Shown: positions 1,252 to 64,000 of the stretch, in pieces | Layout of the letters: every line of letters starts with the position of its first letter | How positions within the stretch are numbered: position 1 is the first letter of the stretch | NCBI RefSeq assembly: GCF_006345805.1 | Contig: NC_043017.1 | Span: forward strand, 18,042,001-18,106,000 | Source of the DNA: Octopus sinensis | Taxonomy: Eukaryota | Direction: 5' to 3' | DNA length: 64,000 nt | Notes under the pieces: generated by a model | The model's database searches: none | The model's input: only the letters and a program-made list of their open reading frames with translations | Told to the model about the DNA's origin: nothing | Translations under genes and position numbers: made by a program

Positions 1252-4200
1252 GTAAGTTTAATGTTTTTATTTAAAGTAATATATCTTCTTTAATTAACAG
1301 TGTTCCTTTTGACATCTACAAACTTCACTGTATTACTTCACTGTATTCTGGCATAGAAGACTACCACCACTCTCTTCTTAGACCTTGTCTTTTATTTAGC
1401 TGTTTTGATTGTAAGGAGATTATGTAAGAATATTGACCACAGCAGCGGTTTTCAAACATTTTATATTGAACTGGAGATCAAAATTACTGTTGAACTTTGC
1501 CAGGATGTGACAGTAAATGGAAGGCATCAAGAACAGAGCGCTGGTGGTTCCCAGGTACAAACAGTCTGGGAGAACCAGTAGCTGTGTCACAAAGAATGGT
1601 GCCTTCAGCAGTCGGAAGTGGGAGATAGGCAAACTTGCAACAGGACAACTTGGTAGAAGCTAAATCCAAAGTGTCCAGAGCTGGCTGATCCTGCACAATG
1701 GCAGTTAAATCGATTGCAGCAGGAGATGAAAGGGAGCACACAAGAAGACGAGAGAGTGCGTCAGCAGGCATGTACTCTGTTCCAGCTATGTGCCGAATGT
1801 CACTTGTGAACTGGGAAATGTAGTCCAGGTGATGAAAAGCATGAGGCGAGTGTATGTCCGATTTAGATGACAGAGCAAACATAAGAGGCTTGTGATCAGT
1901 ATAAATCACAAAATCTCGGCCCTCAAATTGATGTTGAAAATGCCGAACTGACAGGTAGATCTGTCAGAAACCTGTAATCAATAATGATACTGTGCACCAA
2001 TTGTGATATAAAATATCCTAAAAATAAACATCTTTGGCAATCGAAAGTTGAGTATCTTGGCCCAGCGATACAACAGTGTCACTGGAAGGAAATGAACTCT
2101 TGACTTCTCATCTGGTATCTTGATTTGAAATTATAGAATCATGATGATGTACATTGGCAAATAATGAATAGAAATAGATTGCAAAATGATGAAATTCTGG
2201 TTGTCTGCTGTTTTTTTAACTATGTGTATTCACTCTTTGTTGGTAGAGACCATCCCTGGTTTACTCCAATTGTGCAGTTTACTTGTGAGAAAAAAATAGA
2301 AGCTTGATGTTTCAAGCACCAGGACCCTTCTGGGGAACTGCTTTTTTCTTTTCTTAGTTTATTTGGTCCTCTCTCTATTCAGAAATTAGCTCTTTTGAAT
2401 GGAGATATTATTTAAATGATTTTAATAAATCCCATCATTGTTTACAGTTTGAAGGTAATACACATTTGTTATTGACAGGTCAATCATGCGTGGTTGTGAT
2501 AATATGTGTTCCTATTGCATTGTGCCCTTTACACGGGGACGAGAACGGAGTAGGCCAGTGGATTCTATCCTGGAAGAAATTCGCATCTTATCAGATCAGG
2601 TAGGAGCAATTTTTGTTGGGTATAGATACAAATATAACTTATCACACCTTTATTCATAAACATTTTTGTATGAACACTAAAATAGCTTAATACCTAATAT
2701 TGTGGGTACCTTTTCCTTCTCTGAACACTAATCTCTGCTTGCGAAGACCTGTTGAGGCAAGTGAAATTTGATGACAGGCACAAGCACCATACGAGCGTGA
2801 TCGCTGCCAGCCTTGCCTTACTGGCACTTGTGCCCCATGCTAGTAGGGTGCTAAGAGCACCATCTGAGCGGGATCGTTGCCAGAGCGGCTAACTGGCTTC
2901 CGTGCCGGTGGCATGTAGGAGGCACCATTCGAGCGGGATCATTACCAACATCGTCTTATTGGCACCTGTGCCGTTGACATGTGTAAAAAATTCAAGCGAG
3001 GTCGTTGCCAGTACCGCCTGACTGGCCCATGTGTAAAAATTCGAACGAGGTCATTGCCAGTATCGCCTGACTGGTCCCCGTGCTGGTGGCATGTAAAAGC
3101 TCCCACTACACTCTCAGAGTGGTTAGCATTAGGAAGGGCATCCAGCTGTAGAAACTCTGCCAGATCCAGACTGGAGCTTGGTGTAGCCATCTGGTTCGCC
3201 AGCCCACAGTCAAACCGTCCAACCCATGCTAGTATGGAAAGCGGACATTAAACAACGATGATGATGGTAACCCTTAATAACTGAAGCCCAACCTATATTT
3301 ATAAACATTCTTGTATACTTGCAAGGTTGCCTGGGTGGGTTGCTGGGTGGCTCATGTGATGCAGCATGCTTTGCCTCAATGACAGCAGTGAGCTTGCGTG
3401 AACTTACCCCAAACCAATCCCGTGTCTTACACTGTTTCATGCTAAAAGCCTTCAATGCAGTACTATGGATGGAGTTCCTGAGATAATCCCATCTCAGCTA
3501 TGACTCTACATCTCAAAGATCTGTGGAAAGGGTATCCTCCATGAACTTGATGAACTCTTTCACTTTTCTGAGTGTCATGTCACAGTTACATTAATTCAAA
3601 CTCATTTATGTCACACCTGATTTGCATATACATCAGATGAGTCTACTCCAATAAAAAAAGACTGATACTTGAAAAGCTACACTGTCACATTCTGATGATG
3701 GCAAGTAATTTGAGGCTTAAAAGGCACGGTTGACCTTTACTTTGAGTGTGTTGGTGAATATAATAATAATATATTTCTTTGCTACCCACAAGGGGCTAAA
3801 CACAGAGTGGACAAACAAGGACAGACAGACGGATTAAGTCGATTATATCGACCCCAGTGCGTAACTGGTACTTATTTTATCGACCCCGAAAGGATGAAAG
3901 GCAAAATCGACCTCGGCGGAATTTGAACCCAGAACGTAATGGCAGACGAAATACGGCTACGCATTTCGCCCGGCGTGCTAACGGTTCTGCCAGCTCGCCA
4001 TAATAATCATCATCATCATACATTCAGTTTCCATGCTGGCATGGGTTGGATCATTTGATGAGATCTGGCCAGCTGAAGAGCTGCATGTCTGTTTTGGCAT
4101 GGTTTCTACAGCTGGATGCCCTTCCTAATGCCAACCCCTTTACAGAGTTTATTGGGTGCTTTTATGTGGCACCAGCAACCACGAGCCCACAAGGAATGCT

Positions 4201-11229: not shown

Positions 11230-14200
11230 CTGAAATATATTATATGAATAGCATTAAATTCATCATCATCATCGTTTAACGTCCGTTCTCCATGCTAGCA
11301 TGGGTTGGACGGTTCAACCGGGGATCTGGGAAGCCAGAAGGCTGCACCAGGCTCCGGTCTTATCTGGCAAAGTTTCTACAGCTGGATGCCCTTCCTAACG
11401 CCAACCACTCCGTGAGTGTAGTGGGTGCTTTTTACGTGACACCTGATTGTGCCATTGACAGTTGTTGCAGTGATGATGAGGCAGGTGAAACTTGCGTGTA
11501 GACTTTAAGTTAATAGGGAAGCTTCTATATGATTGCTTGACCTACTAGAAATGGTAACCACATATTTTTCAAATCATACAATCTTTAAAAAATTGGAAGT
11601 ATAATATAGTTCTAGATACACTATGTCTGGGGGGAAAAAACAGAGCCAGGATAGTTTGCTGAGTGGCTAAACAACAAAACTAAGAAACCAAAGTTTTGTT
11701 TGAAAACATCTGCCATATTACAAAAGCGATAGATGCCAGAGTTGTGTTGCTGTAACAATAAATTATAGTTGTGGTAATGATGGATATGTAGTATTAAGTA
11801 TAATGGAACAACAGTAATGGTGGGGAAGATCTTAAGTCAGACAAGAAGGGAAAGTGCCTATGAAAATCTTTCTAACTTTCTTGAAACTGGTGTGGTTGAT
11901 GTTTAACTCTTTAGTGTTCACATTATTCTGCCAAAATTAATCCTTTTTATCCAAATTGTTTTGAATTAATCATGCATTATCTTGTAGCGATGAGATTTTG
12001 ATGAGGTAGCTGTTAATTTTTAAAACGATATTGTAGGGTTGGTGTGAGAGACCAGATCCGGCCACTTTGTACATAAAACAGGCAGAATACTTTCGGACAG
12101 ATATGGCCGGTTTAAATGCTAAAGGGTTAACCTGAACATTTATAAAGACTTTCAGTGGACTGTAGTTCTAGGTAGGCTGGACTACATGAAGTATTTAGTG
12201 CAGGGTGAGGAAGGTTAAGCTCAGTAAAGAGTAACAAAAGAAGGGTGTAAGTTTAGGTGGTGTTCAAAAGAACGTGATTATTATGGAAGTAGAAAAAAAA
12301 AAAGAGAGGAAAGTATGCATCTGCAGTGTTGGCTTAACTAACAGCTACTGAATTAATGGTGGGGATCTCTTTAACCCTTTCTTTACAAACCCAGCTGAAA
12401 CCGGCTCTGAGTACAAATGTCTTGTTTTCATAAGTTTTGAATTAAAATCTTCCATTAACCCTTAGTCACAATTTATGTTCCTAACACTAGCTGAATGATA
12501 ACTAAGCTATTGTACTAAATTCTTTGTTATATTTAAAGTAACTGAAAGAAACACAGAGCATCTCAATAAATACAGTAACGAAAGGGTTAAGGTCAAACAA
12601 GCTGCAAGAGAAAACAGCCAGACTTCCCTAATATACAATATTGTCTTTAAAAAGGGAAGAAAGCATTGGACAATGTAGTTCTAGATATACAATATTTGAA
12701 TAAAAGGTCAAGATGAACAGAGCTGGTCTGCTTGATCAAGGTTGACCCAGCACAACACATCACTAGTTAAATTGTTGTGATGGTAATGTAACAGAGAATG
12801 CAAAATGGTCATGTGTTGATGAGGCAATAAATGTTGGATAAAAGATCTGGAAGAGTAACACTTACCTGATATTTACTTATAGCAGTGTCTCTGGTTTCGT
12901 CAATGATCACATGTCCAAGAGGATCATCTTTTTGAGGTTCTGGTGGTGGTGGAGTCTTCTTCATACATCTGAGAAAAGAGAAAAACATTACTATATATAT
13001 ATGCCATACAGTGTTACAAACATGTATGTACCAATAAATATCAATAAACACTTGCAAACTGATGTAAATGCTCTACAAACAGCAACTATAAACCTATAGC
13101 CTGATATGTGTGTGTGTGTGTGTGTGTGTGCTGTATAAACATTATATATAGGTACAACCCGATAACACATACGTGTGTGTTGTATAAACATACTAGCTCA
13201 AAATAACTAATAACAGAAATCCAAACTTACTGTTTTCTCTTCCTCCCGCTGACTTGCAATCCATCTCCAGCCCAGGATCCCCAACCAGGAAGAGTAAGGT
13301 CAATGTCCTTGGGCCTATTTCTTTCCTTTACTGCCTTTTTTTCCTCCTTAAACTCTTCAATGACATCATCATTGGCAAATGCCTGGCTTAGCGTCAATTT
13401 GTCATCATTGCCATCAGATTCACCAGCCTTGTCCTCTTCCATCTCATCTTCCTCCTCTACCATATTTGTCTGGATAGATGTTGCAATTGGAGTGCTCATA
13501 TCAAGGATCTGTTTTGGATCAAGACTGATATCACTTGTTGGAACAAGTGGTTCAGCATATTTAGATCTGGGGGCAGTATCTCGCAGCGATTTAGGAATTT
13601 CATCCATAGCTTCCTCAACAATCATGTTGTCGTCATTTTGTATTGACTGAGCTGTTGACTTCAACTTCTTTACTGTAATGCGAGTGGCACACATCCATGC
13701 ATTACTGCCTCTCGCGCTTACACTTTCTGTGTTTTCTGGCAGGCTATCATCACTTTCATTATCACTCCCTCTGCAATCTTCATCATCATCATCATCATTA
13801 TCTTCTGCAATAACAGGTAGTTTCTTTGTTAGCTCTCGGTTTTTTTTAACCATATCACTTATTCTTTGCTGGGTCTAAAAAAGAGCAATAGAGAAGAAAA
13901 ATGCATGAGAGATACAAAGACAGAGATAAGAAATGGATGAATAATTATAAATCAAAAATATAAAGGTAACACTACAGAGTGGATAAAGGAGATATATTGG
14001 AGTGAGGTAATTACAGAGGCATTAAATTTAGATCAGATTATGAAAGTTACAGAAAGAGCTATAGCTGAACTGATTAGGAAGAGAATTAATTTGGATGAAA
14101 CATAGTCCACCAACTTCATCTGAAATCCTCCTTCCAAGTACAAAGCTGAAGACTAACCTCAAGATGTATCTTACGCATCATCATCGTTTAACGTCCGTTT

Positions 14201-20300: not shown

Positions 20301-23300
20301 AATCCATCCAGCAGTTCTTGAGATATCTTGACCATGGACATACATACATACAAACAAACATAACTGAAAACAATACCTCTGCCTTCGCTAAGGTGGAGGT
20401 AATAATATTTGATCTGCAGGCACAAGCTCGTAGGCAAAAGTCCACAAAAATACAAATAACTAGAATGACTCTAGAATTTGGCAGGTGATCATTTTATCAA
20501 ACCAGGCAGATAAAGTTATCAGCAGGATTAAAAACCAGAATATAAACAGACATCATGAAATACCATAAGTCATTTCATCCCATGCTCTGAAAATTCAACC
20601 ACTAACCAATTTCATTATTAATAGTAATTAAAAAAATATAAGACTTAATAATAACACAAATCATTATATAATTAATAAACAAGATAGTTTTTACCTTCTT
20701 GAGATCCATTGCTTTCAAAGCACGTTGTTCAACTTTTGATAGAGGCTGGGTTTCAGTTGGCATGTGTTCATCTCCATGAAGTAGCTTATACACCTCAATC
20801 TCAAGAGAATTTTGAGGCTGTGAAGAACATGACAAATGATAAGAATAAAATGATTTATAACACATTGGCACAAGGCTACAAATGAAAATATCTGAGTACA
20901 GAATGTAAGCAAAAATCACAGTGAATTTCATGTGATAGTATACTGATTCTACAAGCCAAGTGTGTGTGAGTGCACAAACATGTATGTTTGTGCACACAAA
21001 CGTTTGCTTACTATTGTGCTTCTCTGAAAATCACTCAGCTACTGCCAAATCCACTGTCAACAGGTCATCCATTGACTTTGCACCTTTAAAGGCATGTGGA
21101 ATAAGACCTTAGAGTTTGTGACAGGAAGGGCACCTGGCTGTAAGACAAGGCCTTAAAATCCTTAAAAATGTTTCAGCCCGAAGGCCGCAGCCATGCTGGG
21201 GCACCACCGCTGAAAATATATTTGTCTAACCCATGCTCGCATGGTAAAATAGAACCATAGGGATGTGTAAACAATCCAACCCAAGAAACTATAAAAGAAA
21301 CACTAAATGTGGAATAATAATGAAAGCTTAATTTTTGCTGAGTAGGTGATTACAAAAACCTAATTAGATTGGGTTGTCTGGGGAAAGTCATACTGCCTTA
21401 GTATCTAACACACTCATCGGTCCAATTTCCACTCCATTATTATTATTTTTTTTTTTTGTCTTTCAAAAATTTACATTGCTTTTGCAACCTTATCAATGGA
21501 TGTTGATTCAGTCTGTAATTGGAGATGCATTTTACTTTTGCATTTGAGACTCTGTTATATGCGTGTGCATGGGTGCACACCAGTGTACTTGTGTGAGCAC
21601 ATATGTATGTATTCTGCATATTAGTTTTTTTTGTTTGTGTGTGAGTGTGTGTGTCTATTTGTGTGTAGCTCTGCCAAAGACCAACATGGAGACACACTGG
21701 GCCAACTTGACTTCCACATTTTACCCAAGCACTTGAAGGCCCCATCACTCAGACAAATACATGAATACATCCTCATAAATAAAACGTACCCCATACTAAA
21801 TAGGAAAAACACATAGGAGGTAGAGATACCCCAATACCTACAGAATATACATGCATAAGTACATTTGCTAATAGGCAGTTAAGTAGGTAAATAGATATGT
21901 AGGTAAACAGATAGATAGGTAGGTAGGTAAGTACTTAGGTAATATGGAGACACACACACACACTCAAAAGGAGACGGAAATACATGACCATATATACACA
22001 CACACTCCACATATGCACACAAAGACACATCCATATATAACAGACACGCGTACAAAATCACAAACTCATACATACACATGCAAGGAAGCAGAGCTACACA
22101 CACAAGCATACAAGCACACAAACACATGAATATGCAGAATACATACATACACACACATGCATATACACACACACATATGTACACATGCATATACACATAC
22201 ATATGTGCATATGCATATACACACACACGCACATGTACATATGCATATACACACACACACACACGTACATATGCATATACACACACACACACACACACAC
22301 GTACATATGCATATACACACACACATATGTAGAATACATACATACACACACACATGCATATACACACACACATATGTACACATGCATATACACATACATA
22401 TGTGCATATGCATATACACACACACGCACATGTACATATGCATATACACACACACACACGTACATATGCATATACACACACACACACACGTACATATGCA
22501 TATACACACACACACACGTACATATGCATATACACACACACATACGTACATATGCATATACACACACACACGTACATATGCATATACACACATACATATG
22601 CATATACACACATACATATGCATATACACACACATACATATGCATATACACACACATACATATGCATATACACACACATACATATATACACATGCATATA
22701 CACACATGCATATACACACACATATACACACATGCATATACACACACATATACACACATGCATATACACACACACATACATATATACATATGCATATACA
22801 CACACACATACATATATACATATGCATATACACACACACATACATATATACATATGCATATACACACACACATACATATGCATATACACACACACATACA
22901 TATATACATACACAAGCATGCAACAAAATCCCAAACAGACAAAAGGAACACAACTATAATAACCGGCAGTCAACATCTGTTGCAAAAGTAACGAAAATTT
23001 TTGGAAGACACAAATAAATCAATACCCTGCTTTTGCTTACACGTACAGGGTAAAAAAATTAAATGAATGGAAATTGAACCGGTGCATGTATTGGATATTA
23101 AGACAGTATGACTCCTCCCACAAATTCACTTAAAGACTCTTGCAAATCAGATACAAAAATAAAGCTAATTAGATTAGATTTTACCTTAAAATATTTCTGC
23201 ATACTGGTTTTATCAAGAACTTCCACTCTTTCGTTTTTCTCTGGAAATTGAAGAACATCCTTCTGCAAGCAGTGATAGAAGACGGAAAAGAAAATAGTAC

Positions 23301-38929: not shown

Positions 38930-39270
38930 AACGCCCCAATCTTACCAATTGACCAATGAAATTTCAAATAATTCAACTTCCGCTTTGGTTCCCGAACAAT
39001 AAGTTACCATTATTCCACTGTGATTCTCAGGAAAGACTAATTTATCTCAAACGATTCCAGTGTTGCTGGTTTTCTTTAAGACAGTGTTCTGTCAGACCAA
39101 TTCCATTGACAATTAACCATTTATTTTGACGTCCACGTACACTACTTATACACAAACAGTCTACGATATTTCTTAACCAACTCTTGGAAGCTAATAATGG
39201 ACAGAGACCAAGCTACTTTTCTACCAATTCAAACATCGGCGTTACCCAACTAGAATTATACGAGGTATCT
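38930..39270 (+). promoter_or_regulatory. Candidate promoter and non-coding first exon of ZNF-A
   Basis: Three CCAAT (38936-38957), ETS-like ACTTCCG 38976-38982, and a module ending GAG|gtatct at 39264 that is homologous to 44740-44870 and 51640-51769. Confidence 0.5.
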
Positions 39271-40096
39271 TTTTAATTTAATGTTATTTCCGCTGAAATG
39301 TCATTTCTTCGTTCATCAATAATATTTGTTTTTCTTTAATATAACAACCTGCCTTTTATAAACTGCTCGGTTAGGACTTAGGGGTGTTTAGTCTGCTAGA
39401 AATAGTAGCCAAAATGACATACCTACAACTTAGTCACCTCAATCGCCCTAGTTTCTTTCCTCGTAACTTTTTCAAAAACTCCTCTAAGGAAATTTTGCGG
39501 ATGAACGTTTTCCAATGTGTAGATTACGATTATGTTCATGAATTGTTGCTCAATCTGGAAGAAGAAAAAAATAATAGCTAGATTTTCCATCAAATTTAGA
39601 TGCTGCTAAGTCAACATATTTTGGCATATGCTTATATTTTTAATGCTGCTTTACTACAGTTTCGTGCCCCAGCATATCGTCTTTGTTCCTGCATAAATTT
39701 CCCGAAAAATACATATTTTGCTGGCATTGTTTTCGCAAGTGTAGATTATGATAGTAATGATAAGAATTTTGGTAAATTGTGTGTGTGTGTGGGGGGGGGT
39801 GATAGGTTTCGGATGGTTTTTTTCCGAGTAATTTTAATTCTTCTTTAAAGTGCATATTTTTAAATGACATTTTGCAGAAATACGTTTTCGAGAATGTAAC
39901 TTACGTAATGTTGATGCTTCAAGCATATATTTATTATCTCCCTTCACCTGTTTCCAAGCAAGGTGATGTTTTCTCATAGCTTCATAGGTTTTTTTTTTTA
40001 CAGAAGACTGGAAACAAACAACTTGTAAGACAATGATGCTGATTTAGAACCATCATATTCCCTTTGTAAATCGACAGGGATACACACACACATGCA

Positions 40097-40160: not shown

Positions 40161-42044
40161 TAAATGAGAGTCAAGAATTTTGAAGTTATATTTTGTCTAA
40201 ATTTAAGCTAATTTGTTAGCTCAGTGTTTAAAACCTTTAATCTATTAGCATTCCAGTTGCTACTTCCCATTGTTACATAATACATTTTTTTTATTAGATT
40301 ATTTAATGGAGTTATAAGTTTTGCATCCTCAATATTTTATACTGTTCCTCTATTGTTTCAGAAGAAAGGATGACATTGGTGTAAAAGAAATTTTTTACTT
40401 TGGATGCATCATCAGTACATACAAATGTTTAAAGAAGAAAAGCAGATGCCTTACACAATCGATGTAACCCTGTATGCATAAATTTATGGTGGAACTACAA
40501 TGAAATGAAATATCTCTTGTGAAGTGAGAGTAAAAGCATTGTCATTTTACTTCACTGTTTGGAAAATTTTGCATTCTGATTAAATTTGGACAAATTTTCA
40601 AATGGAATTGTTGCATCTTGTGAAATTGACTAAGTAAATAGTTGATTGACAGAGGTATAACAGTAGAAATATTTGTTTGGAAACAAATGGAAAATTGAAC
40701 AGGAGTAAAGTGAAATTGAAGAGGTATTATGGCAAACGAAGCTGAATGTAAAACAGAGTTTGAAAGAATTTATCTTCCTGATGAAATACAGGCAACCAGA
40801 GGAAAAACAATGTACTACTGTGATATCTGTGATAATTCATTCTCTCAGAAATGTAACTTGACTACTCACAAATGTGTTCCTATCAGAGAAAAACCATATC
40901 ACTGTGATATTTGTGGTAAATCATTCTCCCAAACCAGTAACTTAACTACTCACATACGCATTCATACAGGAGAGAAACCATTTCACTGCAATGTCTGTAG
41001 TGAATCATTCTCTCAAAGAAGTCACCTCACTAAACACAAACGTATTCACACAGGAGAGAAGCCATATCACTGTAATGTCTGTGGCAAATCATTCTCTGGA
41101 AGTGGTGATTTAACCACTCACATACGTACACATACAGGGGAAAAGCCTTATCATTGTGATATCTGTGGTAAGTCATTCTCTGGAGGCAGTGATTTAACAC
41201 GACACAAACGAATACATACTGGGATTAAGCCTTATCACTGTGATGTCTGTGGTAAGTCATTCTTGTCAAATAGCGACTTAACTACTCACAAACGTATTCA
41301 TACAGGAGAGAAGCCATATCACTGTGATATCTGTGGTGAGTCATTTTCTGGAAGTAGTAACTTAACTAAACACAAACATGTTCATACAGGGGAGAAACCG
41401 TATCACTGTGATATCTGTGATAAATCATTCTCTCATAATAATGCTCTGACAACACACAAACGCTTTCATACTGGAGAGAGACCATATCACTGTGATGTCT
41501 GTGATAAATCATTCTCTGTAAGTAGTCACCTAACAAAACACAAACGTATTCACACAGGAGAGAAGCCATATCACTGTGATACCTGTGGTAAATCATTCTC
41601 TGGAAGTAGTGATTTAACTACTCACAAACGTATTCATACGGGTGAGAAACCATATCACTGCGATATCTGTGGTAAATCATTCTCTAAAAATCATAACTTA
41701 ACTACACACAAAAGCATTCATACTGGGGAGAAGCCATATCATTGCGATATCTGTGGTAAATCATTTTCTCGCAGAGATAACCTAACTAGACACAAACATA
41801 TTCATATTGGCAAAAAGCGATATAACTGATGTCTGTGACAAGTACACCTTTCAAAAAAGCAACTATTCATGTATTCATACAGAAAAGCAACCATCAATTT
41901 CAAGTCAACTTATATAAAAAAAACTAGTTCATATAGCTGTAAATAGATCCATACAGAAAATATGGTATAACATGGTGATGCTGAACTCTCAACACTATTT
42001 TATAAAACTGCAATTACATCCACAACAGTGAAATTTTTAATAAA
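40161..42044 (+). repeat. Segmental duplicate copy A (intron end + ZNF exon 2 + 3' UTR)
   Basis: High identity to 46196-47876, starting after a (TA)n tract and ending at AATAAA. Confidence 0.93.
40729..41829 (+). CDS. Tandem C2H2 zinc-finger protein, paralogue A (366 aa; 1 degenerate + 11 canonical fingers)
   Basis: Intact ORF of CxxC-x12-HxxxH repeats with TGEKP linkers; acceptor gtttcag| at 40361; AATAAA at 42039-42044. Confidence 0.92.
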
Positions 42045-44479: not shown

Positions 44480-45024
44480 ATTCGGTACTTCACGGAACTC
44501 TCGTTTATTTTTTATATATTCCCAAAATTAGTTGTGCTCCTTGGACGTTGCTAGACATCTTGCCACATGACCAAAACTAACCAATGAACATCCAACATTG
44601 TTTCCCCCACTCCTTCCATTCATTCCTCAGTAAGCCACGAAGGGAAAGGCTTATGTAATACGATTCCTCTGCTGTTTCCAAGATACTGTTGGTTTCAGTG
44701 TTTTGTGAACCAATTCCATACACAACGTACATTAATCCCTTTATCTTGACGTACACCAGCAACAGTTACACACGACAATCTACAACATTCCTTAACTAAC
44801 ACTTGGAAGCCAACAATCGACGAAGACCAAGCTACTATCTGCCAATTCAACATAGTTATTATTATATGAGGTATTTTTTTTTTAATGTTTATTTTATTTA
44901 ATTCATCCGTCTTTTCTTCGAAAATCGATAGAACAACCTACTTGTTATAGATCTGTTGAATGACGGCTAATCTGGGACTAAATAATGAGCCTCTGCTACA
45001 AATAGTAACTAATTTTGGCACTAA
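44480..45024 (+). promoter_or_regulatory. Candidate promoter and first exon of ZNF-B (duplicated at 51401-51921)
   Basis: Module ...gaagaccaagctact...tatgag|gtattt with donor at 44870/44871; diverged homologue upstream of ZNF-A. Confidence 0.55.
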
Positions 45025-46195: not shown

Positions 46196-47876
46196 TAAAT
46201 GAGAGTCAAGAATTTTGAAGTTATATTTTGTCTAAATTTAAGCTAATTTGTTAGCTCAGTGTTTAAAACCTTTAATCTATTAGCATTCCAGTTGCTACTT
46301 CCCATTGTTACATAATACATTTTTTTTATTAGATTATTTAATGGAGTTATAAGTTTTGCATCCTCAATATTTTATACTGTTTCTCTATTGTTTCAGAAGA
46401 AAGGATGGCATTGGTGTAAGAGAATTTTTTACTTTGGATTCATCATCTGTACACACAAATGTTTAAAGAGGAAAAGCAGATGCCTTACACAATCGATGTA
46501 ACCCTGTATGCATAAATCTATGGTGGAACTACAATGAAATGAAATATCTCTTGTGAAGTGAGAGTATAACAGTAAAAATATTTGCTTGGAAACAAATGGA
46601 AAATTGAACAGTGAAGAGATATTATGGCAAACGAAGTTGAATGTAAAACAGAGTTTGACAGAATTTATCTTCCTGATGAAATACTGGCAACCAGAGAAAA
46701 AACAATGTACTACTGTGATATCTGTGATAATTCATTCTCTCAGAAATGTAACTTGACTACTCACAAATGTGTTCCTATCAGAGAAAAACCATATCACTGT
46801 GATATTTGTGGTAAATCATTCTCCCAAACCAGTAACTTAACTACTCACAAGCGCATTCATACAGGAGAGAAACCATTTCACTGCAATGTCTGTAGTGAAT
46901 CATTCTCGCAAAGAAGTCACCTCACTAAACACAAACGTATTCACACAGGAGAGAAGCCATATCACTGTAATGTCTGTGGCAAATCATTCTCTGGAAGTGG
47001 TGATTTAACCACTCACATACGTACACATACAGGGGAAAAGCCTTATCATTGTGATATCTGTGGTAAGTCATTCTCTGGAGGCAGTGATTTAACACGACAC
47101 AAACGAATACATACTGGGATTAAGCCTTATCACTGTGATGTCTGTGGTAAGTCATTCTTGTCAAATAGCGACTTAACTACTCACACACGTATTCATACAG
47201 GAGAGAAGCCATATCACTGTGATATCTGTGGTGAGTCATTTTCTGGAAGTAGTAACTTAACTAAACACAAACATGTTCATACAGGGGAGAAACCGTATCA
47301 CTGTGATATCTGTGATAAATCATTCTCTCATAATAATGGTCTAATAATTCACAGACGTATTCATACAGGAGAGAGACCATATCACTGTGATGTCTGTGGT
47401 AAATCATTTTCTGTAAGTAGTCATTTAACAAAACACAAACGTATCCATACGGGTGAGAAACCATATCACTGTGATACCTGTGGTAAATCATTCACTAAAA
47501 ATCATAACTTAACTACACACAAACATATTCATACTGGAGAGAAGCCATATCATTGCGATATCTGTGGTAAAACATTCTCTCGCAGAGATAACTTAATTAG
47601 ACACAAACATATTCATATTGGCAAAAAGCGATGTAACTGATGTCTTTGACAAGTACACCTTTCAAAAAAGCAACTATTCATATATTTATTCATACAGAAA
47701 AGCAACCATCAATTTCAAGTCAACCTATATAAAAAAAACTAGTTCATATAACTGTAAATAGATCCATATAGGAAATATGGTGTAACATGGTGATACTGAA
47801 CTCTCAACACTATTTTATAAAACTGAAATTACATCCACAACATTGAAATAATATACACTGTGAAATTTTTAATAAA
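46196..47876 (+). repeat. Segmental duplicate copy B
   Basis: Matches 40161-42044 with ~120-bp and ~14-bp leader deletions and an 84-bp finger deletion. Confidence 0.93.
46624..47640 (+). CDS. Tandem C2H2 zinc-finger protein, paralogue B (338 aa; 1 degenerate + 10 canonical fingers)
   Basis: Near-identical to A but exactly 28 aa shorter; acceptor at 46396; AATAAA at 47871-47876. Confidence 0.92.
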
Positions 47877-51400: not shown

Positions 51401-51921
51401 ATTCGGTACTTCACGGAACTCTCGTTTATTTTTATATATTTCCCAAAATTAGTTGTGCTCCTTGGACGTAGCTAGACATCTTGCCACATGACCAAAACTA
51501 ACCAATGAACATCCAACATTGTTTCCCCCCACTCCTTCCATTCATTCCTCAGTAAGCCACGAAGGGAAAGGCTTATGTAATACAATTCCTCTGCTGTTTC
51601 CAAGATACTGTTGGTTTCAATGTTTTGTGAACCCAATTCCATACACAACGTACACCAGCAACAGTTACACACGGCAATCTACAACATTCCTTAACTAACA
51701 CTTGGAAGCCAACAACCGACGAAGACCAAGCTACTATCTGCCAATTCAACATAGTTATTATTATATGAGGTATTTTTTTAAATGTTTATTTTATTTAATT
51801 CATCCGTCTTTTCTTCGAAAATCGATAGAACAACCTACTTGTTATAGATCTGTTGAATGACGGCTAATCTGGGACTAAATAACGAGCCCCTGCTACAAAT
51901 AGTAACTAATTTTGGCACTAA
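51401..51921 (+). promoter_or_regulatory. Recent copy of the ZNF-B promoter/first-exon module, upstream of the Merlin ORF and ZNF-C
   Basis: Near-identical to 44480-45024 apart from a ~22-24-bp deletion between acgtaca repeats; donor retained at 51769/51770. Confidence 0.6.
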
Positions 51922-53749: not shown

Positions 53750-54420
53750 GAAATTAGAATGTTTTTTTTTGCCCCATATTCTCAATCTCTATATTTTTCC
53801 ATGTAGATTGAGAAAAAGAATTTCGGGAAAATGTTAAAAATTTTGCAAACGTGGTTTTTTTGCATGTTCGGAATCTCCGTCATCTAAAACAGGAATCTGG
53901 TTAAAAAAAAAAAGAAAGAATATTTTGGTGACCGGGAGCTAAACTAGATCCTGAAAATTAAGAAGGGGAGAAAAACTAGATCATGGGAACTTTCATACAG
54001 TCCTCTCCCCACCCCATCGGAAAACACATTCCCCACAAATTTCTTTATAATTGTAATTTATGTTGTTTGAAAGGTGCTTCTGTAAAATTTCACTAAAAGA
54101 TATCCATTTTCCTGAAAGTTCTGAGGGGAAAGAACAGATTGTGTGAATTTTCTGAGTCCTTCCCACCTTTCAGAAAAAATTTCCTCAGAAATGTCTTTAT
54201 AATCATAATTTGTGCCATTTGAATGGTATTTCGATAAAATTTCATCAATATATATCCATTTTCCTGAAAGCTATGAGGGGAAAATTGGATCTTGTGAATT
54301 TTCTGAAAGCCCTCTCCCCACCACCCTATGTTTGTGCAAATTTTTTCTTTCATATTTGTTTTCTACACAGTTGTTAATACCTAGCAGGCTGGTACTTTTT
54401 TGTTTTCGTTAACAGGTCTC
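53750..54420. repeat. Diverged relatives of the 32356-34283 TIR subrepeat (also ~44060-44420)
   Basis: gtgaatttt.cgaaagccc.ctcc.cacc...ttttttcatatt.gtttt motif shared with the long-TIR element. Confidence 0.55.
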
Positions 54421-55044
54421 AAATTCACAATTCTGTGAAAATTCCCCACCCGAAAAAAAAAAAAAAGTTGAGGTGTTATATATATTGTGTTTGGATCAGA
54501 ATTCTGCCTATTAGACAATGTGAAAGGGTTATCTTTCAGACAAAGTTTATCGAAACTAAAAGTGTTTGTTCAGTTTCCATAAAGATTTTTTATTTCCTTA
54601 AACCACCCCCTTTTTTTTCCAGGTGAATCGCATATGTTTGTGTATTTTTTGTGTATGTATGTATGTGTTCTATGTCCATGTGCATAAACATATATTTACG
54701 CAAGTATGCACACATACACACATAAACATAAGTGATTCAGTTGGGTAAAAAATTTAAGACAGACTTTTCCCAAAAGATATCCATGTTGTTAGTGTTATAG
54801 CTTCCGTGAACTTATTACTAATGTCATTGAGCTGGCTTAGTATGTAGCAGGGATATGCTGCCTGAATAAAATAAATTGATAGCAACATTTTCCTTTTATC
54901 GCAAAATATGCATCTAATTCCATAAAATTATGAAGGTTACTCTGATTGCTATGTATAAAATGCAAAATTAAAAATTTTTTTGTAGATTAGGTAGGCATAA
55001 TTTTCCCCTGTTTTTCAATCTCAGTATTTAAGCTACACATAGTG

Positions 55045-55360
55045 CTGGTGGCATGTAACAAACACCATCCGATCGTGGCTGTGCCAGCCTCGCCTGGCTT
55101 CCGTGCCGGTAGCACGTAAAAAACACCATCCGAGCGTGGCCGTTCGCTAGCCTCGTCTGGCACCTGTGTCGGTGGCACATAAAAAGCACCCACTACACTC
55201 ACGGAGTGGTTGGCGTTAGGAAGGGCATCCAGCTGTAGAAACACTGCCAGATAAGACTGGCTTGGTGCAGCCTTCGGGCTTCCCAGACCCCAGTTGAACT
55301 GTCCAACCCATGCTAGCATGGAAAGCGGACGTTAAACGATGATGATGATGATGATGATGA
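55045..55360 (-). mobile_element. Short retroelement family C with ~3 tandem units
   Basis: Same consensus, (GAT)n end. Confidence 0.85.
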
Positions 55361-55918
55361 TAGTACTGCTGTAGTATATGTGCTGCATACATTCCTACAA
55401 TACCGTTTTCTGTACGTACTATAAAAGCAGAAGTAAATCTGCCTTCAACTCAGTCATGCGCCTGTGTTTCGCTTATTTTTTAATGTTTTACTATATAAAG
55501 GCAGCCAACTGAGTAATTACTGATCACATGTGCCTGGTGTGTAGTCATTATTATTTATTGCTATGAAATTTCTGCTATTGAATTTCTCTTGCCTACTCTT
55601 TATATCTTCCACTTTTTCTCTCTTTCAGAAAACCAGATTATGTTGGCATAAACATCATTTTCAGAGGATAAAGGACATATAGTAAAAGAATATAAAATCT
55701 TTTCTGTTTCTGTTGCAGTTTTCTATTGTTCCGAACTGTATTCTGCTTAAAACTACTACCACACTTGTCTGTTTTCTTTGACGAGTTCCTATTTTCTGAG
55801 CATTATTTTCATCTCAGCGGTTTTTTTTTTTGTGAAACTCATATTTTTGGTTGCTGTCCTGTCACTACCTCATTTTGAACTGTGTGTTTTCCTGGATCTT
55901 TTCAAACTAAATAGAAGT

Positions 55919-56809
55919 ATGGCCACAGCCAACTCTCACCTTTCAAGTCTGATGGAGAAATTGAAAACTGAGGAGGATGTGGTTTCTTATTTACAAGAAA
56001 AGGGTATTATCCCTAAAAGGAAATTATGTGCAAACAAACACTATATGAAGAAAAGGATGCGTGATGGAACGATTTGTTGGCGATGCTCCCACAAAGCATG
56101 CGGTGTGCGTATTTCTGTCCGAAGAGGAACATGGTTGGAAGGTAGCACTCTTCCTCTTAAAACTGTAGTGCTTTTCCTTTACGCATGGTCCAAGGAATTG
56201 ACTTCAATCCGTTTTTGTATTGAAGAACTCGGGATCAACCACGGCACAGCTGTTGATTACAACAGCTACGTTCGTGAAATATGTGCAGAGGACTTGCTCC
56301 GCCACCCAGTTCAGATAGGTGGTCCTGGGAAGACTGTTGACTTAGACGAAATAGTCTTCTCAAGAAGTAAACCTAACCGAAGAAGTTTGCTACCTGAGCA
56401 GTGGGTGTTTGGAGGAGTGTGTCGCGAGACCAAGGATGTTTTCCTTTACGCGGCATCATGTCTGAATCGCGACACACTAGAGGAATGCATACGTCAGTCG
56501 GTTCTTCCAGGAACCACAATTTTCAGCGACATTTGGGAGTCCTATTCTCCCATTCTTAAAATTGATGGTTACGAGTTGCGTTATAGAACAGTGAACCACA
56601 GTGTGGAATTTGTTAACTCAGAAGGTGGTATCTACATGAAACTAGTGGAAAACACAGGGATCCCTTTAAAACGACGGAGAAAACAACGTTGTGGGACCGA
56701 AAGTTCTACCATTGACTTGTATCTCTGTGAGAGTATGTGGCGCAAGAGATATAAGAATTGTAATTTGTTTGAGAAACTCCTTGAGTGTATTTTAAGCTTT
56801 TGTTTTTGA
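55919..56809 (+). CDS. Merlin/IS1595 (ISXO2-like) DDE transposase-derived ORF, 296 aa, uninterrupted
   Basis: GGPGKTVDLDE (D143), QWVFGG, LPGTTIFSDIWESY (D204), TVNHS, E244, YLCESMWR; N-terminal C/H-rich ribbon with SVRRGTWL. ATG at 55919 follows a pyrimidine tract and AG. No TIR or TSD seen. Confidence 0.88.
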   Translation: MATANSHLSSLMEKLKTEEDVVSYLQEKGIIPKRKLCANKHYMKKRMRDGTICWRCSHKACGVRISVRRGTWLEGSTLPLKTVVLFLYAWSKELTSIRFCIEELGINHGTAVDYNSYVREICAEDLLRHPVQIGGPGKTVDLDEIVFSRSKPNRRSLLPEQWVFGGVCRETKDVFLYAASCLNRDTLEECIRQSVLPGTTIFSDIWESYSPILKIDGYELRYRTVNHSVEFVNSEGGIYMKLVENTGIPLKRRRKQRCGTESSTIDLYLCESMWRKRYKNCNLFEKLLECILSFCF

Positions 56810-56859
56810 ATTTTCTCAATAAAAATGTATTGCTTTTTTTTGTTTGTTTTTTAATTTAA

Positions 56860-57860
56860 TTTTTGACAAAAGAACTTGGCAGGTGTAAAGCCTTTGCACT
56901 CTTTCGCATTTTTTCAAAAATTTGTTTGGATTCCTGTTTTTGATATAGGAGATTATGATTTTGCCCAAAAAAAAAACATTTTCAAAATTTATTTCCCCCT
57001 TCCCTACCCCAATTAAATTTTTTTTTTTATTCAGTGTAGAAAAATACAGAGATGATACATACACACTGGGTAAAACATGGATTATGTTATTTCTTGCTAT
57101 TTGCATGCGGAAAACTACAGCTCAACTCCAATTGAAACCAACTTTTTTCTGATTAGCGTATTTAAAAATCTGATCTTCAATATGAACTCAAAATGAACTT
57201 TTTTAAGAAATTATGTCATTTAGCTGTTATTTCTAGCATGTCAGGTTTTTCTGCTAATGATTTGATACTTTTATTCCATTGTTTTAGTAGAAATCTACGC
57301 GGTGCCCCAGCATGGCCACAGCTCATTAGCTGAAACTGGAAAAATCAAAATCAATCAAAAATGGGTAAAACATGAAGTTGTTAGCTGAAAGCTGGGAAGT
57401 GGAGGAGGGGAGGGAAATTGAGTGTTTTTTAAGAAAAATCAAAATTTAATTAAAAAAATTTCTTTTGCCAGTTTGTAATCTCTGTATTTTTCTGTGTGGA
57501 TTAAAAAATTGAGATGGGGAGGGGGAAATTAATATTTTGAAAATGTGTTTTTTTGGCAGAATCATAATCTCTGAAATCAAAAACAGGAATCCAAAGAAAT
57601 TTTTGAAAAATAAAAAATAAACAGAAGTGGGTAGAGATGCAAACACTTCTGCTTATTTTTTCTTTTTCAAAAATTTCTTTGGATTCCTGTTTAGGGTAGG
57701 GATGCAAACACTTTACTTCTGCCAAAAATTTAATTTGGGATTTTCCCTTTCTAAATTGCTTATATTCCTATTTGAAAATTCTACCCTAACCTTAACTCTA
57801 CACCCCCAACTCTAAATTTTAATTCTTACCCTAAGCTCCAACCCCAACCTTAGCATATAG
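56860..57860. repeat. Old diverged inverted/tandem repeat block with degenerate CCCTAA-like repeats
   Basis: ~56905-57060 is inverted at ~57480-57610; aaccct/accctaa units at 57780-57850. Confidence 0.6.
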
Positions 57861-58279
57861 TTTGTTTGTTTGGTAATATTTTTCAAAACAATTTTATTCT
57901 CAACTTTTTTTCCTTTTTAAATTCTTTACATGCTTGTTTCACCATTTTACATTAAATGTTCATTAAATATTATTAAAACTTCAGAACTTCTTATAATGTA
58001 TGCCATCATAATGTTTTGCTTTCATTTTATTTAATGAAATTTTATGGTTATAATATTTTTACTTTCATTCTGTGATAGCCTCTCATGCCAAAGATGCCAA
58101 CCTTCAGATCCTATTTTCTGGTTGGATAAAAATTATCAAACTTTAAACCTATGTAACATTTTTCAAAAAAAAAAATGTTGGAATAGTGAATAAGAGAATC
58201 AGATTCAGCATGAAAAATTATATCAATATACCAAATTTGAAAATTTTCTCTTAATTTGAAAATTTCAATAATTGCAACA

Positions 58280-59040
58280 GCAATAGAAATGACCTGGTAT
58301 CTATAAATCTATGGTTGAATGCATTCAGAATGAGCTTGAATTAATTTTCAAAGAAATATCCAAAATCTTCAGATTAGAACAAAGACCTCATTGATAGAAA
58401 TAAAACTGTAGAAATACTTGTTAAGTATGATGTATACATGTTACAGTGAGAAAAGTAATATCAACGAAATTGTGTGAAGAGGCAAAAGCAAAACTGCCTA
58501 AAAGGATTGATTTTCCTGAAGACCATCATATTACTGTGATATCTGTAGCAGATCTTTTTATAATAAATATACCTTAATTACTCACAAAGGCAGCCTCGCA
58601 GGAGAAAAGCCACACCGCTGATATTTGCGATAAATCCTTCTCTCCTTCCTAGATGTAATTTAACCACTCAAAGACACATTCAAATATGAGAGAAGTCCAT
58701 GACAGCAGTGTGCATAACATATCTATGTGATATCTATGGCAAATCATTCTCTGGAAACAGACTTGACTAGATACAAATACATTCATTCAGGAGAGAAATC
58801 ATGTCACTTTGTTATCTGTGGTATATCGTTCTCTAGAAGTAGGAAATTAACTAAACACAGTTAAACAGGCCAGAATATTGGGTACTATTTTCCTGGCACC
58901 AGCACTAGTGAGGTTGCCATGTGATATTTGTGGCAAATCATTCTCTAGGAGTTATTTAACAGAACATCAATGCTTTCACACCAGAGAAAAGCTACTTCTA
59001 TTTGATATCTGCATTAAATTATTCTCTCACAGCTATTCAC
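58280..59040 (+). pseudogene. Decayed C2H2 zinc-finger paralogue C (remainder of exon 2)
   Basis: YCDICSRSFYNKYTLITHK...[28 protein letters not shown] and other fingers with stops and frameshifts. Upstream 58290-58530 aligns by eye with the exon-2 leader of A and B. Confidence 0.85.
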
Positions 59041-60224
59041 AAACTGAAACGGATGCAGTGGAATTGTGCTTATCACCAGGATAATGAAGTGCACAGAAAA
59101 ACCGCTAAGTGAAGGGGACGTAAACACCAGCATCGGTGGTCAAGCAATAGTAGGGGGACAAACACAGACACACATACATATATACGACAGGCTTCTTTCA
59201 GTTTCCGTCTACCAAATCCACTCACAAGGCATTGGTCGGCCCGGGGCTATAGCAGAAGACACTTGCCCAAGGTGCCACGCAGTGGGACCGAACCTGGAAC
59301 CATGTGGTTGGTAAACAAGCTACTTACCACATAGCCACTCCTGCACCTATATTATATAACTTCTTTTTTTTTAATCTTTGTACATATTTCAGTCATTGGT
59401 CTGCTGCCATGCTGGAGCACCACCCTGAAGAGTTTCATCAAACAAATTTACACCAGCACTTATTCTGTCAGTGTCTTTTACCTCACTGCTAAGTGATAGG
59501 AATGTACATAAACCAACACTGGTCGTCAGGTAGTGGTGGGTGACAACCACATATATATATAGATAATGGGCTTCTTTCTGTTACTGCATATCAAATCCAC
59601 TGACAAGGCTTTGCTTGGCCCAAGGCTTATTGTAGCGGACACTTCTACTATAGTGGAAGAACTGAAAACCATGGTTGGAAAGCAAACTTCCTACCACACA
59701 GATGTAGATAGATATACAGCCAGCATCTGTATATATTTTTGTACACCTGTATATCTATGCACTGACCATGTCCATGACAAAAATCACAGACTACAGCATA
59801 CATGTGATCACAAAAACACAAATTTCACAACCTGCAAAGTAAACCCAATGATATCATATGGCACATTACCTCATGAAGGTCACTGCTAGCTCTCACTGTG
59901 CGCACAACCGTATGCTGCTATCTTGTATATATACTGAGATACGTGGCACCTTGCTGTCCTCAAGAAGACCTGTCCTATATGGCAGAAGTGTTAAGGTTGC
60001 TCTCTCTGGTGAGGAGGATTGGCCTACAAGGGTTCTGTGCCAGTGCCACAAGGGTCCTGTAATAGCACTCGTGCAGTATCATGTTAAAAGCACCCAGCGC
60101 ACACTGTAAACCAAGCCAAATCAGACTGGATACTGGTGCAGCTCTCTGGCTTACCAGCTCCAGCCAAACCATCCAACCTATGCCAGCATGGAAACATTAA
60201 AGGATGATATCTCTTTACTCTCTC

Positions 60225-61329: not shown

Positions 61330-62100
61330 AATGATGTGCTCGGAAAGTAATTGCGTATTTTTTTTGTTTTTGACCACTATGAAATATGTATCAACCAATC
61401 AAGTCACAGTTAAGGTCGAATGGGAGGGAAATGCCTAGAAATAGTATATCGTCTCTTCTATCAAAGCTATTTCAGTAATTAATTCCATGGATGAAAAGAA
61501 ATTTCACAAACAACATATTCGTCATTGTTTACTGTATGAGTTTCGAAGGAATAGTTCCACTACAGAAGCAATGAAAAACATTTGTCAAGTGTATCCGGAT
61601 GCAGTGAAAGCTCGTACGTGTCGGCTGTGGTTTAAAAGGTTTAAAGATGGTGATTATGACATATCCGACAGGCCTCGCTCTGGAAGACGACCTGCCCTGA
61701 ATGACGAATTTTTGAATGAGACTATTGAATCAGATCCGCGTCAAAGCACCAGAAATTTAGCGCAAAAATTTAACGTGTCACGTTCAACTGTCCACGAACA
61801 TCTCAAGCAAATTGGCAAAACATGCAAAGAAGGAATTTGGGTTCCACATGAGCTCACGCTTGAGAACCAAACACAACATTCCATCGCCTGCTGCAAACCC
61901 AAGACGGAAAAGGAAGATCTTTAGGATGGTAAGTTCTTCCACATCCTCCATACTCACCCGACTTAGCACCTACAGATTTCCATCGTTCCGATTATTAGAA
62001 GATTTTATAAGAGGCAAATCCCATTCAGAAACAGAGTCAATTGAAGACTTCAGATTATTTTTTTCAAGAAAAGAAATAGGATTCTTTGAACGTGGCCTAA
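61330..62100 (+). mobile_element. Internally deleted mariner element; ORF 61487-61924 encodes the intact N-terminal HTH DNA-binding region
   Basis: IRHCLLYEF..WFKRFK.GD...D.PRSGR..WVPHEL; C-terminal relic PHPPYSPDLAP at ~61936-61971; left TIR-like ggaaagtaattgcgtattt; most of the catalytic domain and the right TIR are absent. Confidence 0.9.
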
Positions 62101-63612: not shown

Positions 63613-64000
63613 AAATATCAGATGACATTGGCACACAAAAATATTTTACTTCAGTTCCATCAACAATATTTATCTTTTCAAGACTAAAGGATGATGTTTC
63701 AGAGAACAGATATAACCCTACTTACATAAATCCATGATGGAATTTATTGGGAAATGAAATATTTCCTGTGAACTGGGAATAATAGCAAAACTTTTCTGCT
63801 TCATTGATTGGAATAAGTTAAGGCAAATTTACAAAAGAGTTTACAACAACTCCAGATATTGACAAAAGTAACCGGTGATGGAAATAAAACAGTAGAAATA
63901 TTTTGTGGAGACAGATTTAAAAAGCTAAAACTAGAAAAAAATATCTGTATTGTAGGGAAAGAGAAGCAATATTAAGAAAAATGAGTTGTGAGGGGACAGT
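63613..64000 (+). other. 5' part of exon 2 of a fourth ZNF paralogue (fingers predicted beyond the window)
   Basis: atttcag| acceptor at 63612, then sequence homologous to A 40362-40680 (gatgacattgg, aacccta..cataaatc.atg.tggaa, gaaatgaaatat, aacagtagaaatattt). Confidence 0.65.

Follow-up and report, generated by a model that had tools for sequence, protein, structure and literature searches.

An intact transposase frame in a fossil Merlin element of Octopus sinensis: retained by its host or open by chance

The question raised by the locus described here is how a transposase open reading frame (ORF) has stayed open within a transposon that can no longer move. The ORF lies in a stretch of 64,000 nucleotides of the Octopus sinensis genome (assembly GCF_006345805.1, contig NC_043017.1, positions 18,042,001 to 18,106,000, forward strand), which is referred to as the window, and it is carried by a Merlin DNA transposon inserted into the leader of ZNF-C, a decayed member of a cluster of C2H2 zinc-finger (ZNF) genes. 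The element is an ancient, immobile copy of an extinct Octopus Merlin family, and its ORF is intact well beyond a calibrated neutral expectation. That the frame has been kept open by selection at the level of the host, and not by luck, is judged to be somewhat probable.

An open frame in a dead Merlin family

The ORF that the analysis is concerned with is the following.

55919..56809, + strand: transposase ORF of 296 aa, in which a Zn-ribbon/helical N-terminal part precedes an RNase H-like core that contains D143, D204 and E244

It is open for 296 codons, as a first-pass annotation of the window had stated. The family to which it belongs is large, with at least 368 candidate places in the genome at the DNA level and at least 2001 at the protein level. 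The copy-number check proposed in that annotation, a BLAST search of the genome with the ORF, found no near-identical young copies: the only 100% match is the ORF itself, and identity to any other copy does not go above 77%. A majority consensus was built from 48 other copies; it reads as an open 296-aa Merlin frame with the canonical motifs that the window copy has lost. From this consensus the window copy stands at a distance of 17.3%, the median for dead copies being 16.5%. In the family tree the window lineage is a single long, star-like branch among dead copies (stem length 0.134, followed by branches of 0.053 for O. sinensis and 0.028 for Octopus bimaculoides), and younger subfamilies are also present. 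The copy is immobile: its termini are mutated, a 992-bp insert is nested within it and no close relative exists above the identity limit just given.

The ORF is found intact, at 296 aa and with no indel, in all three octopus species compared. The ortholog in O. bimaculoides (XP_014790827.1) is 88% identical and that in O. vulgaris (CAI9738362.1) 99% identical, and in both species (loci L061 and L062, respectively) the ORF and its flanks lie in one collinear block, which bears out the syntenic conservation that had been put forward as a check. The insertion therefore predates the split of O. sinensis and O. bimaculoides, dated to ~34 million years (My) ago, the split from O. vulgaris being dated to ~2.5 My. 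Of the 891 sites of the ORF, 63 differ between O. sinensis and O. bimaculoides, without an indel; collinear non-coding blocks of the same species pair differ by 7.9% and carry 7 indels per kb.

How often such a frame would survive by chance was calculated from a neutral model calibrated on the non-coding substitution spectrum, with a transition/transversion ratio of 1.68 and an excess of change at CpG. Under this model a substitution creates a stop codon with a probability of 0.044 and is synonymous with a probability of 0.26. For 36 dead copies with 3888 substitutions the model predicts 171 stops, and 157 are observed (a hand tally of per-copy counts); frameshifting indels in dead copies occur at 0.031 per substitution. 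The indel rate of the flanks (7 per kb, or 6 indels predicted in the ORF) was set aside, and dead copies were used instead: in their ORF region the rate is 0.045 per substitution, about half as high. Copies of the same age as the window copy have ~4-12 stops and 2-10 frameshifts, and the window copy has none of either. Over the ~154 substitutions that separate it from the consensus, the probability of no stop is ~0.001 and that of no frameshift ~0.008; the joint per-copy probability of intactness is ~1e-5, or ~1e-6 once the O. bimaculoides branch is included (~154-184 substitutions). Even with 2000 copies, only ~0.002-0.02 intact survivors are expected genome-wide. These figures speak against the alternative that the ORF belongs to a neutrally decaying dead transposon whose frame is open by chance and whose annotation as a gene reflects the open frame only, an account to which we nonetheless give a substantial chance, if one short of even.

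A second observation that neutrality does not predict is the distribution of amino-acid changes since the O. sinensis/O. bimaculoides split, which singles out one segment.

56375..56566, + strand: codons 153-216 (beta2-beta4 and alpha1, including D204), the sole segment with detectable purifying selection since that split

Here a single nonsynonymous difference is seen where 10.2 are expected, a tenfold depletion that does not extend to synonymous changes, of which there are six (scan permutation p = 0.0085, corrected). The maximum-likelihood (ML) estimate of omega for the segment is 0.077 (p = 0.0037), whereas the N-terminal DNA-binding part has an omega of ~1.2. O. sinensis and O. vulgaris are separated by three nonsynonymous and five synonymous differences.

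A number of results weigh against host-level selection, and most of them are as a chance survivor would have it. Taken as a whole, the ORF evolves in a manner statistically indistinguishable from neutrality: the ML omega between O. sinensis and O. bimaculoides is 0.65 (likelihood-ratio test, p = 0.13), and 44 nonsynonymous differences are seen against 48.6 expected at the calibrated neutral rate. The first-pass annotation had named a ratio of nonsynonymous to synonymous substitution rates (dN/dS) near 1 as a refuting condition, and for the ORF as a whole the ratio is not distinguishable from 1. Relative to the consensus, the corresponding ratio of proportions of differences (pN/pS) is 0.51, in the middle of the range of stop-riddled copies (0.40-0.78), while lineages that stayed active show 0.10-0.23. 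On the long stem the number of nonsynonymous over synonymous changes (N/S) is 2.56, against a neutral 2.66, and is neutral in every region including codons 153-216, which implies that any constraint is recent or patchy; dead copies have an N/S of 2.84, equal to the model's 2.83. Residues that are near-invariant among Merlin proteins have been replaced (G155R, H222Y, T240M, W247G/R, and the residue at position 145). This decay of the neighbours of the catalytic residues has gone on after the split and partly independently in the two lineages: E144K and G237S arose in O. bimaculoides and H239Y arose in O. sinensis, and W247 gave way to a different residue in each. A family of hundreds to thousands of copies makes a rare lucky survivor conceivable, and the O. 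bimaculoides branch alone, which is free of ascertainment, would have stayed intact with a probability of ~0.04-0.15 under two indel calibrations. Another old copy (L002, below) is intact as well, with no annotated ortholog in the other two octopus species, although this absence is uninformative. The comparison comprises three species, two of them 99% identical. Exact-sequence and ortholog look-ups placed the ORF on no assembled contig outside genome assemblies, and the databases searched thus yielded no transcript of it.

An NG86 estimate of dN/dS (0.48, Fisher p = 0.01) was considered as a sign of purifying selection and rejected, because stop-riddled copies give values of 0.40-0.78, neutral simulation shows no deficit and the ML omega is not significant. 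The suggestion of the first-pass annotation that the transposase has been kept open and may be domesticated is supported in part: it stands as regards a frame intact in three species beyond neutral decay, and it is weakened by a near-neutral omega over the whole ORF and by terminal repeats that are still present.

Other intact ORFs of the same family were noted at C27:10839503-10840375 (L002), C28:2967696-2968529 (L035), C11458:34976-35722 (L037) and C28:4907820-4908512 (L040). L002 (LOC115225419) is of an age like that of the window copy (terminal branch 0.127) and has no stop and one in-frame indel only, and L035, L037 and L040 form a divergent subfamily with near-zero terminal branches (LOC115225578). 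It is possible that these four are further exaptations or recently active copies. A second Merlin family, with a protein identity of only 31-35%, has dozens of copies with intact frames of ~305 aa; it looks young and is possibly still active.

The predicted protein and its putative role

The predicted protein has the general features of a Merlin transposase. The catalytic residues named in the first-pass annotation, D143, D204 and E244, are present at those positions and fall on invariant or near-invariant columns of an alignment of 29 Merlin proteins, D143 and D204 being 61 aa apart. The altered motifs around them were likewise correctly described, the family consensus reading RRKYNRGR, HRTVNH and HTQQVESTW where the window copy has RSKPNRRS, YRTVNH and YMKLVENTG. 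Against the PF12762 (DDE_Tnp_IS1595) profile the window protein scores 25.7 bits, slightly below the cutoff of 27 bits; scores of 32.0 and 37.4 bits are reached by the O. bimaculoides ortholog and one paralogue, respectively, and the matches of a profile search are almost all PF12762 proteins.

The RNase H-like fold of DDE transposases is ordered beta1-beta2-beta3-alpha1-beta4 and, further on, a helix; beta1, the stretch after beta4 and that helix bear the acidic residues. An AlphaFold (AF2) model of the protein (pLDDT 82.2) has this order of strands (139-146, 162-168, 174-179 and 200-204) and helices (184-194 and 237-256), with the three acidic residues at the expected places. Among solved structures (PDB), the best Foldseek matches are the cores of retroviral integrases (E 1e-5).

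If the frame has indeed been retained by the host, the following course of events may be envisaged. On the copy that inserted into the ZNF-C leader before the O. sinensis/O. bimaculoides split, selection would have acted against truncation and, at least over the last ~34 My, also on the half of the RNase H-like core that comprises beta2-beta4 and alpha1, while the N-terminal DNA-binding part and the helix bearing E244 would have drifted freely. Transcription could start within the element's own 5′ region or at an upstream copy of ZNF exon 1 spliced to the acceptor at 55628|55629, with translation from the native ATG (55919) and a transcript ending at the AATAAA at 56819. Judged by its residues, the product is most likely a catalytically impaired transposase derivative in a non-catalytic role, since residues invariant in active Merlin transposases (G155, H222, T240 and W247) have been lost and the DNA-binding part and the E244 helix are drifting. 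The best guess as to this role is that of a partner or dominant-negative regulator that would bind Merlin transposases or their ends, a guess made because younger Merlin subfamilies coexist in the genome. A mode of selection in which the frame and half of the RNase H-like core are kept while the DNA-binding end is free is unusual, and it would fit a regulator of the dominant-negative or ends-binding kind.

The element, its insertion site and its transcripts

The anatomy of the element was resolved by comparison with other copies of the family and comprises the features listed here.

55695..58294, + strand: whole Merlin element, made up of ~1.6 kb of family sequence and the insert nested in it, delimited by homology to other copies
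55695..55720, + strand: left terminal inverted repeat (TIR), terminal GG mutated to AA, identified from the inverted-repeat pair and family termini
55721..55918, + strand: native 5′ untranslated region (UTR), including the tract ...TAAATAGAAGT just 5′ of the ATG, with the same sequence in dead copies
56819..56824, + strand: AATAAA polyadenylation signal, 10 nt past the stop codon, read from the sequence
56864..57855, no strand assigned: foreign insert of 992 bp with long inverted repeats, nested in the 3′ UTR of the element and filling the gap in family homology
57856..58294, + strand: 3′ subterminal region of the element and right TIR (58270-58294, ending ...GACC), from the inverted repeat and family homology

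In a BLAST search with 54401-59200, two blocks of homology are shared with 30-60 other copies in the genome, one from 55697 to ~56863 and one from 57856 to 58292-58298. The TIRs are 23-25 nt long and of the GG type; their arms lie at 55698-55720 and 58270-58292, show 83% complementarity and agree in position with the termini common to other copies, for which the terminal consensus is GGATCTTTTCTGTTGCTGTCACAG at both ends. The window copy retains ...CC at its right end, and its left GG reads AA. The first-pass annotation had reported that no TIR could be seen and had named TIR loss as part of the usual profile of domesticated transposases; the reported absence is mistaken, the TIRs being degenerate yet clearly recognisable. 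A perfect 8-bp target-site duplication (TSD), CTATTCTA, flanks the family copy L026. No TSD can be demonstrated for the window copy, as its flanks agree at only 5/8 or 5/9 positions.

The Merlin superfamily of eukaryotic DNA transposons was reportedly described by Feschotte in 2004. Merlin elements are related to bacterial IS1595/IS1016 and are defined by GG-TIRs, a TSD of 8-9 bp and an IS1595-type DDE domain, the TIRs being at least 24 nt long with a terminal 5′-GG and the first two DDE blocks being 50-70 aa apart (PMC8101967). With its GG-TIRs, the 8-bp TSD of L026 and an IS1595-type DDE domain, the family fits this published definition. The window copy departs from the superfamily as a fossil would: the left GG is mutated, an insert is nested within it, the TSD is unrecognisable, several block residues are replaced and the PF12762 score falls just under the cutoff.

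It could be argued that the element is still an active autonomous Merlin, with its ORF under selection for transposition, given an open frame, a DDE triad in place, recognisable TIRs and younger Merlin subfamilies in the genome. This is held to be very improbable. In addition to the loss of the left GG, the imperfect complementarity of the TIRs, the 992-bp insert, the replacement of invariant residues and the identity ceiling described above, all three species carry the insertion, fixed, at the orthologous locus, and the stem N/S is neutral, unlike that of lineages that stayed active.

The nested insert is probably an element like a miniature inverted-repeat transposable element (MITE). Its inverted repeats lie at 56910-57004/57516-57610 and at 57581-57629/57644-57692, and its first ~28 nt are common to O. 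bimaculoides. The second pair of repeats forms a 49-nt near-perfect hairpin, and a degenerate CCCTAA-like tract was noted near 57780-57850. The hexamer after the stop codon reads AATAAA in O. sinensis and O. vulgaris and AGTAAA in O. bimaculoides. In the O. bimaculoides assembly a gap of 682 N (L061 10972-11653) begins 80 nt past the stop codon; a supposed loss of the element's 3′ end and of ZNF-C in that species was withdrawn, the assembly gap being located exactly there.

The element lies within a tandem C2H2-ZNF cluster, in which ZNF-A (40720-41829), ZNF-B (46615-47640) and the start of ZNF-D (63613) can be recognised in the window. The parts of ZNF-C on either side of the element, and a copy of exon 1 upstream, are as follows.

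51500..51921, + strand: copy of the ZNF-B upstream/exon-1 region, GT donor after 51769, 92% identical to 44579-45024 and 72% to 39157-39289
55589..55628, + strand: intron end before ZNF-C exon 2, with a polypyrimidine tract and acceptor AG at 55627-55628, matched by alignment (p <= 0.003) to the corresponding regions of ZNF-A, -B and -D
55629..55694, + strand: left piece of the ZNF-C exon-2 leader, by alignment that includes the intron end
58295..58526, + strand: right piece of the ZNF-C exon-2 leader, from matches to ZNF-B and ZNF-D
58527..59032, + strand: decayed, frameshifted C2H2 finger array of ZNF-C, 66-77% identical to ZNF-A/ZNF-B fingers (E down to 8e-25)

That a ZNF leader has been split, as initially proposed, is real. 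On the left, 55589-55662 (within a query of 55570-55694) matches ZNF-A, -B and -D at their intron/exon-2 junction, with shuffle p values of 0.003, 0.003 and <0.0003, a score reached by 0 of 300 control windows; the left leader alone (55629-55694), when taken without the intron end, is not significantly similar to the ZNF paralogues. On the right, 58297-58334 aligns with 46506-46543 of ZNF-B (p 0.005), and 58343-58419 matches 63826-63903 of ZNF-D (E 3e-5). The leader is interrupted, but at 55694|55695 and 58294|58295 rather than at ~55680 and ~58290 as first placed. These junctions coincide with the ends of the element, which confirms a Merlin insertion into the leader of the large ZNF-C exon. 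The frameshifted ZNF pseudogene that had been described downstream is likewise substantiated by the homology of the fingers at 58527-59032 to paralogues A and B (E 1e-25). The first-pass annotation had suggested that the insertion killed ZNF-C. In ZNF-B coordinates the insertion point is ~110 nt into the exon, in the untranslated leader, and the insert sits ~230 nt upstream of the paralogues' translation start. A match between 55686-55710 and 63778-63802 of ZNF-D (E 0.55) was rejected as leader homology, the segment being the left TIR.

The exon-1-like region beside ZNF-C is 92% identical to that of ZNF-B, and the fingers of the two are only 66-77% identical, so that the two parts of what is called ZNF-C may differ in their history of duplication. 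Transcripts that enter the locus could have their promoter and first exon at 51500..51921. This copy is situated 3.9 kb upstream, and its donor was read straight from the sequence.

The annotation of O. vulgaris, in which PASA supplied alternative forms on the basis of transcript data, includes a second isoform of the ortholog (CAI9738361.1, P0073), and this indirectly implies that the locus is transcribed. In it, transposase residues 1-149 are joined to a 34-aa remnant of ZNF-C, encoded by an exon at 58761-58864.

56367..58760, + strand: intron of P0073, a chimeric isoform in the O. vulgaris annotation, with GT-AG sites in O. vulgaris and in the window

The splice sites of this intron, at 56366|56367 and 58760|58761 in window coordinates, are canonical GT-AG. 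Their conservation in the window, together with the exon-1-like copy and its donor and an intact acceptor at 55628|55629, would suit a further explanation, namely that the functional product is a host-transposase chimera and that the ORF is kept within the ZNF-C transcription unit, either through the annotated isoform or through a transcript that runs from ZNF exon 1 into the transposase. We consider such a chimera improbable. The constrained codons 153-216 are intronic in CAI9738361.1, which makes it unlikely that the chimera is the selected product, and the tail that it adds consists of 34 aa from a frameshifted pseudogene. In O. bimaculoides any ZNF-C remnant would be hidden by the assembly gap. 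The pyrimidine tract and AG located 4 nt before the ATG, which had been remarked on earlier, do exist; they are native 5′ UTR of the transposon and occur in dead copies too, and are therefore not an acquired acceptor.

Comparison with domesticated transposases, and other features of the window

The classical domesticated DDE transposases include SETMAR, the PGBD family, THAP9 and the pogo-derived CENP-B/Tigger-derived genes. Merlin is among the few cut-and-paste superfamilies for which, to our knowledge, no domesticated descendant has been established in animals. Cephalopods are known for the transposon load of their genomes and for expanded C2H2-ZNF clusters. If the octopus ORF is functional it would add to the known class, with which it shares a single-copy, immobile and orthologous frame derived from a cut-and-paste transposase that has lost neighbours of its catalytic site. 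It differs in the extent of constraint: in the classical genes purifying selection is strong along most of the protein and in general covers the DNA-binding domain too, whereas the octopus ORF has a whole-ORF omega of ~0.65 (not significant) and its N-terminal DNA-binding part evolves at ~1.2.

Closer parallels are the putatively domesticated Merlin ORFs of Stentor, Symbiodinium and Perkinsus, which were proposed from ORF preservation alone (PMC8101967). These, like the octopus ORF, combine an old insertion with a preserved frame, are sometimes syntenic between species and sometimes have degenerate catalytic motifs. Unlike them, the octopus ORF resides in an animal host and is still bounded by recognisable TIRs; its preservation is quantified against dead copies of the same family, and the constraint on it is weak and local and not that of a conserved protein.

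That the ORF is a Merlin-derived octopus host gene, and with it the first documented exaptation of Merlin in an animal, kept for >34 My and possibly >100 My by a crude clock, is put forward tentatively and is on balance doubtful. Were it true, it would be a new case of exaptation inside a ZNF cluster, and a tractable test of how a dead transposase is retained under weak and partial constraint. Should the ORF be a lucky survivor, the lesson is one of method: an open, syntenic and annotated ORF with an uncalibrated dN/dS of ~0.5 is insufficient evidence of domestication, since such a ratio is also obtained from dead copies of the family.

Multi-copy Merlin-like proteins of the mantis shrimp Oratosquilla oratoria (P0006 cluster) are named 'male abnormal protein mab-31-like' by NCBI. 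The database name hints that MAB-31 of Caenorhabditis elegans, the product of a developmental gene, is Merlin-derived, which could not be confirmed: the worm protein is absent from the best 120 profile-search matches, and the 2010 MAB-31 paper reported no similarity outside worms.

Elsewhere in the window, 13227-13874 (- strand) is an open frame matching the Utp14 domain (PF04615, 93 bits) and represents either an exon of a UTP14-like gene or a retrocopy of one. A remnant of an RT_RNaseH retroelement is located at 1484-1963 (- strand, 23.8 bits), and a TG/CA-rich low-complexity tract of ~1.1 kb at 21879-23018 gives rise to spurious ORFs of 290-380 aa in several frames. At 61445-61924 (+ strand) there is a mariner-type HTH_48 N-terminal fragment (75.9 bits); in O. 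bimaculoides the orthologous piece (L061 13354-13788) carries an annotation as a gene of 144 aa.

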